Source: Selaginella moellendorffii
Lineage: Eukaryota; Plantae; Lycopodiophyta
Reading direction: 5' to 3'
NCBI RefSeq assembly: GCF_000143415.4
Contig: NW_003314276.1
Span: 2,641,891-2,676,847, forward strand
DNA: 34,957 nucleotides
Position numbers and translations under genes: made by a program. Every line of letters starts with the position of its first letter. The stretch's first letter is position 1. Positions 23,666-23,934 of this stretch are shown here, one piece after another. Below the pieces are notes generated by a model, which did no database searches, had not been told where the DNA came from, and was given only the letters and a program-made list of their open reading frames with translations.

Positions 23666-23667
23666 GC

Positions 23668-23934
23668 CTGCTCACCATCACAGGCAAGCACCAAAAGACG
23701 CTGCCGTGGACTATAGAGAACTACAGCAAGGATCTGATCATCAAAGTTGACGAGGAGGATGGGACGGTGGTGAAGCGGCCTTTCCCGAGCCGCAAGCAGG
23801 TTTTGTCGATGAAGCACGACTTTTTCAAGAGGCCGAGCCCGACACCTCCGTGGGAAGTCATCAGGCATTGGAAAGAGCTGAGGAAATCTGTCGACAGGGA
23901 AACAGCACAGAGGGAGTCGAGAGGTGGTGCTTAA
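23668..23934 (+). CDS. Second maturase domain X-like ORF, C-terminal part (5' end hidden in gap)
   Basis: Open frame from the gap: LLTITGKHQKTLPWTIENYSKDLIIKVDEEDGTVVKRPFPSRKQVLSMKHDF...RGGA*. It is collinear with LFTLSKKYDEHPQVIYRRFSKELLVPVIDGDGELVEKQAYPSSLEIKKMKRGY of the 10350-11143 protein. Not listed in the ORF track. Confidence 0.65.
   Translation: MLTITGKHQKTLPWTIENYSKDLIIKVDEEDGTVVKRPFPSRKQVLSMKHDFFKRPSPTPPWEVIRHWKELRKSVDRETAQRESRGGA

Follow-up and report, generated by a model that had tools for sequence, protein, structure and literature searches.

Introduction

The nuclear maturases (nMATs) of Arabidopsis splice mitochondrial introns in trans, with nMAT1 and nMAT2 acting on three introns each (PMC3927076). 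The Selaginella mitochondrial genome carries 35 group II introns, every one of which is spliced, and its nad1i728g2 intron is retained and tabulated without an intron ORF (PMC5654404). In the account of Guo and Mower (2013) that is given in PMC3927076, Selaginella has eight nuclear maturase loci, several of which arose by lineage-specific duplication. The nuclear nmatRT and nmatRX genes of Pelargonium are a precedent for partial or split maturase genes in the nucleus (PMC5174742), and the superfamily SF10-28 of cox1i44-like and atp1-intron ORFs also holds MatR and nMAT3/4 (PMC10012718).

We analysed the final 34,957 bases of the Selaginella moellendorffii scaffold GL377580.1 (hereafter, the window) together with the other haplotype, GL377630.1, for which coordinates are given on the fetched locus L003. 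At the edge of an assembly gap, the window contains an open frame that the original prediction took for a second domain-X-only paralog, next to a 243-aa domain-X protein encoded upstream. We suggest, with good confidence from the sequence comparisons, that this frame is the C-terminus of a full-length nuclear maturase of the nMAT type, dead in its reverse transcriptase (RT) and probably functional.

Results

Open frame at the gap edge

The frame is open for 88 codons on the plus strand (23668-23931), from the gap edge to a TAA stop at 23932-23934, and encodes the end of domain X followed by a short helical tail. This frame is real, and so is its resemblance to the tail of the 243-aa protein (frame 10520-11140). 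BLASTP aligned the two with 15/53 identities (28%), one gap and an E-value of 2e-5, and the BLOSUM62 score of 66 was reached in 0 of 20,000 shuffles (mean 27.9, sd 4.6, maximum 58). The same pair was the top non-self tblastn match within the window (E 6e-4). The alignment to the 243-aa protein covers the first 53 only of the fragment's 88 residues. The motifs L.T...K, SK.L, DG..V, Y/FPS and MK, proposed earlier as common to both tails, are all present in it, and the TITGKH of the fragment is nearer to the organellar consensus TLAGKH than the TLSKKY of the 243-aa protein, as had been noticed. A Pfam search with the 88-aa fragment by itself gave no match, because just residues 507-525 of the PF01348 match of the complete protein (431-525) fall outside the gap.

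Gap content on the other haplotype

A phmmer search of 1.84 billion proteins with the 88-aa fragment as query detected a single real match, the 594-aa protein XP_024514755.1 (RefSeq 'uncharacterized protein LOC112340501'), which is 99% identical across residues 507-594. A second match, P0119 (E 6e-4), was dismissed as chance, the protein being repetitive and unrelated. XP_024514755.1 is encoded at L003 10001-11785 in one uninterrupted intronless frame, with the same neighbours as in the window. According to blastn, the window and L003 are collinear up to 23495 (L003 9222) and again from 23666 (L003 11517), and the flanks of the gap are 98.8-99.6% identical between the haplotypes. The collinearity on both sides means that the gap of 100 N stands for about 2.2-2.3 kb (Table 1). 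On L003 this stretch contains the first 506 codons of the 594-aa maturase, covering RT2-RT7, the linker and most of domain X. The promoter region lies here too, as do a probable short first exon with its 62-nt intron and the 5' portion of a divergent gene described below. The right gap edge cuts the codon of Cys506 within the YHLRYSCLLT motif. In the visible tail, the haplotypes differ in three codons, of which two are silent and one is a Ser/Thr exchange.

It had been stated correctly that the RT domain of the gene could not be seen in the window, as the RT part falls in the gap. The gap was examined through the alternate haplotype, where the frame is open upstream and carries RT2-RT7 in the same frame; the gene is therefore a full nuclear maturase, an ordinary nMAT, which is the outcome that the original prediction had itself named as its refutation. 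The second domain-X-only paralog is thus refuted for the GL377630 allele.

The 70 bases that precede the gap (window 23496-23565) match neither the other haplotype nor the rest of the window; they are either a contig end of low quality or an insertion specific to this haplotype. Since these bases are unmatched in L003, the GL377580.1 allele could differ inside the gap; from the sequence we infer that it is intact there.

Table 1. Coordinates of the maturase features and the assembly gap (window positions unless L003 is named)
Feature	Position	Strand	Remarks
243-aa gene, exon 1	10350..10463	+	XP_024531433.1 ('nuclear intron maturase 4-like') / XP_024545853.1
243-aa gene, exon 2	10526..11143	+	PF01348 only, no RT
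100-N assembly gap	23566..23665	.	about 2.2-2.3 kb on L003 (9223-11516)
3' end of the 594-aa maturase gene	23666..23934	+	last 2 bases of Cys506, residues 507-594, TAA
Predicted 9-codon ATG exon of the 594-aa maturase gene	L003 9858-9884	.	then candidate 62-nt intron to 9946

Architecture of the 594-aa maturase

Residues 23-247 of XP_024514755.1 match TIGR04416 (group II RT/maturase, E 6e-12), the PF01348 match to domain X reaches 47.7 bits vs. a cut-off of 20.8, and LtrA (PDB 5g2x) is matched over both the RT and the X parts (E 2.5e-17). Alignment with intron-borne maturases demonstrated that RT2 (HSFRPGRG.H.AL), RT4, RT5 and RT7 (DYLGF) are retained; in the motif alignment RT0 is absent and RT1 is a trace at most. 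The three catalytic aspartates are all lost: T76 replaces the one in RT3, and HAGN (175-178) replaces YADD. The linker from RT7 to domain X is ~200 aa long, and is likewise long in several of the fetched intron maturases. The protein ends in a helix, ~70 aa past the Pfam domain X; no endonuclease was detected C-terminal to X, and residues 525-594 gave no Pfam match.

The structural comparison used an AlphaFold prediction from a 15-row alignment, with a pLDDT of 64 for the whole protein and of 87-95 in domain X; a model from the single sequence (pLDDT 36) was discarded. The top PDB match of the predicted fold is the LtrA complex 8h2h (E 3e-10). In the ESM Atlas the protein falls beside streptophyte maturases 640-870 aa long (TM 0.61 over residues 12-584), and those of the top clusters measure 649-674 aa.

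The Rfam model Intron_gpII (RF00029) detected no domain V/VI in the window or in L003, and it does match in 4/4 of the intron-borne comparison loci scanned. The GC3 of the gene is 0.70, with 0.66-0.77 across RT, linker and X vs. a GC content of 0.48 downstream, and its neighbours are nuclear genes (GDSL lipase, threonine synthase, PPR, F-box). A word-based homolog search recovered the two Selaginella genes and one cox1 intron maturase, and no close ortholog. Scans of viral and prokaryotic genomes for domain X relatives found none.

With a degenerate RT-derived domain (seen on the other haplotype), domain X and a free-standing nuclear gene, the protein has these sequence features of an nMAT. 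The RT part upstream of X sets it apart from a domain-X-only class, while the lost aspartates, the absent RT0 and the lack of domain V set it apart from the mobile group II intron-encoded proteins. It lacks the C-terminal D/En domain of the type II nMATs (nMAT3/4), and its RT from subdomain II, domain X and lack of En correspond to the build of MatR.

Predicted first exon and targeting

The upstream sequence suggests that the RefSeq start of XP_024514755.1 may be 27 codons too late and that a first exon was probably missed. The predicted 9-codon ATG exon, with a telo-box-like element TAGGGTTT upstream, is followed by a candidate phase-0 intron of 62 nt (GTGAGT...CAG) and by 18 in-frame codons before the annotated ATG. 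Examined separately, the 9-codon exon and the 18-codon piece are both Arg/Ser-rich and contain no acidic residue. This composition is typical of presequences, and the two pieces together would probably form one.

The gene at window ~22700-23565 on the minus strand (L003 8510-9370), which we take from its motifs to be UDP-xylose-synthase-like (UXS), lies head-to-head with the maturase gene. It has a stop in LLG*KPK at the expected Trp in both haplotypes, and its RefSeq model is 132 aa only. The UXS-like gene may therefore be a pseudogene that shares a bidirectional promoter.

Neighbouring 243-aa gene

The 243-aa gene is a separate gene, 13 kb upstream of the fragment on the same strand, and is encoded on both GL377580.1 and GL377630.1. 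Its GT-AG intron (10464-10525) is 62 nt long. The domains X of the 243-aa and 594-aa proteins share 34% identity over 131 aa (E 2e-21), or 31% in the multi-protein alignment, and the 594-aa protein shares 36% (score 200) with the intron-borne maturase of a metagenome contig (L005). Domain-X trees pair the two Selaginella proteins in 15-20% of bootstraps, and the full-length tree pairs them at 56/52 but carries a warning of long branches; the AU test of this clade gave p 0.27, so that the clade was not rejected. These trees contain no plant nMAT or MatR sequences, and the comparison set is biased, having been retrieved by patterns derived from the query proteins themselves.

Synonymous sites are saturated between the two genes. 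We asked whether a DNA match of 69% over 131 nt points to a recent duplication. It does not: 24 codons are identical where 19.9 are expected (z 1.4), and conserved protein residues together with codon bias account for the match. The old, selectively retained duplication that the original prediction proposed is not shown by these data, as the two domains X are no closer to each other than to the metagenome-contig intron maturases, the pairing in trees is weak (bootstrap 15-56%) and the synonymous sites are saturated. The family of domain-X-only proteins that it envisaged gained no support either, a protein search at 113-359 aa having returned the 243-aa protein alone.

Other features of the window

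A full U6 snRNA gene was recognised at window 28047-28149 on the minus strand (Rfam 110 bits). It is present in both haplotypes, upstream of the threonine synthase frame and on the same strand, with about 70 bp between its end and the first in-frame ATG of that frame. An AT-rich MITE-like element with ~70-bp terminal inverted repeats occupies window 21217-21506 and is absent from the other haplotype, and a 56-bp palindrome is found at window 16290-16345. We detected an intronless 463-aa ORF at window 71-1462 plus, in a frame open from the window start; it matched nothing in Pfam at threshold, and the fetched loci that overlap it carry no gene call there. A B3-domain-like frame (18003-18410 plus), below the Pfam cut-off, and an F-box/Kelch frame (19204-20004 plus) are joined by NCBI into one gene of 345 aa (371 aa in the other haplotype), and are possibly two genes. 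At the other 100-N gap (window 9628-9727), between the DnaJ-like and N-acetyltransferase genes, the alternate haplotype has about 130 bp of sequence (L002 9248-9375).

Discussion

By analogy with the known nMATs and MatR, the 594-aa maturase is most likely a trans-acting organellar splicing factor. Its gene would have descended from a group II intron ORF of the mitochondrial lineage. The protein would be made in the cytosol and imported into mitochondria via the predicted presequence, and would there bind some of the 35 Selaginella group II introns in trans. The dead RT scaffold and domain X would contact these introns and aid their folding and splicing as an RNA chaperone, the maturase being presumably incapable of DNA copying or mobility. 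This maturase may already be among the eight published Selaginella nMat loci; the accession XP_024514755.1 was not found named in the papers searched, and the supplements of PMC10012718 give no Selaginella loci as text.

The reading of the fragment as a second domain-X-only protein, from a family of nuclear thumb-only splicing factors, could draw on the above-chance likeness to the 243-aa protein and on a window that by itself is without the 5' part. We consider it extremely improbable, as RT2-RT7 stand in the same frame on GL377630.1, between collinear and nearly identical flanks, and the length-restricted protein search returned nothing besides the 243-aa protein. The frame could also belong to a decaying, non-functional remnant (an organellar intron ORF copied to the nucleus) or to a broken GL377580.1 allele; the extreme divergence, the dead active site, the absence of a close ortholog in the word-based search and the adjoining, possibly broken UXS-like gene would suit such decay. 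However, 594 codons are open with nuclear codon use (the high GC3 vs. the lower GC content downstream), motifs persist although the catalytic residues have gone, the two haplotypes agree in the stop and the tail with 2/3 of their differences silent, and RefSeq retains XP_024514755.1 as a gene. We therefore regard the remnant as improbable, and a full-length, RT-dead and probably functional nuclear maturase as the preferred reading.

Where this maturase came from is a separate question. The 594-aa gene could be the mitochondrial matR (mat-nad1i728) moved to the nucleus and serving nad1i728g2 and other introns in trans. Its build, with RT from subdomain II (PMC5174742), a long linker, X and no endonuclease (PMC3927076), resembles that of MatR, and nad1i728g2 is kept in Selaginella without a tabulated intron ORF (PMC5654404). 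The nearest fetched sequences include cox1i44-like and atp1-intron maturases (named from flanking exon sequence), whose superfamily also takes in MatR (PMC10012718). The streptophyte maturases of the top Atlas clusters, at 649-674 aa, are about the size of MatR. Against this, RT0/RT1 and En can be lost convergently, and the tree was made without a MatR sequence from a comparison set biased by the query-made patterns; we consider the transfer of matR unlikely, although less so than the remnant.

The 243-aa gene, in turn, could be an old local partial duplicate of the 3' third of the 594-aa gene that has gained its own first exon. The two genes lie on the same strand 13 kb apart, and for the S. 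moellendorffii genome of ~106 Mb the chance that any pair of 8-16 maturase loci falls so close is 0.7-3%, a post hoc figure. The 594-aa protein is the top match of the 243-aa protein in the set (score 192 vs. 175), the YAHVA and DG..V loop is common to both proteins, each gene starts with a short exon followed by a phase-0 GTGAGT intron of 62 nt (predicted in the 594-aa gene), and the full-length tree unites them. Yet this is the single join and carries the long-branch warning, the domain-X trees seldom recover the grouping, the 594-aa protein is as near to the L005 intron-borne maturase as to the 243-aa protein, the DNA match is accounted for by protein conservation and codon bias, and the AU test neither rejects the clade nor shows it. 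We put the local duplication at slightly under even chances; if true, it is old. That the 594-aa gene is an RT0-less, MatR-like nMAT outside the published Selaginella set, and that the 243-aa gene is its local partial duplicate as well, appears rather improbable as a joint proposal, only a little less so than the remnant.

The analysis corrects a gap artefact, removes the support for a domain-X-only family at this locus and gives the 'uncharacterized' LOC112340501 a name as an RT-dead nuclear maturase. The gene was already in RefSeq as uncharacterized and is possibly counted in the literature. It is, by its sequence, a candidate trans-acting splicing factor for the intron-rich mitochondria of Selaginella. 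If the 243-aa gene is a partial duplicate, it would show a route to a stand-alone thumb gene, and the pair would let the RT scaffold and domain X be tested apart. If both the MatR-like reading and the duplication are true, the maturase work would be split between an RT0-less core and a stand-alone thumb.

Taken together, the comparison with known systems places the 594-aa maturase as follows. Its neighbour differs in being 243 aa long and having no RT, and shares domain X (34% over 131 aa). LtrA of Ll.LtrB (5g2x, 8h2h) and the cox1/atp1 maturases share the RT2-RT7 fold, the thumb/domain X and the SCL.TI.gKH motif; they differ in being intron-encoded, in keeping RT0 and YADD and, mostly, the En region, and in acting in cis. 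MatR and the Pelargonium nmatRT/nmatRX share RT from subdomain II, domain X and the lack of endonuclease (PMC5174742); unlike nmatRT/nmatRX, the 594-aa maturase is a single unsplit ORF, and its likeness to MatR is one of build. RT0 and most or all of RT1 are missing, unlike in the nMATs, and there is no En, unlike in the type II nMAT3/4. With nMAT1-4 of Arabidopsis and the eight Selaginella nMat loci it has in common a nuclear ORF outside any group II intron, a degenerate RT with domain X and the absence of mobility; its predicted first exon and the 18 in-frame codons may provide an organellar presequence as well.
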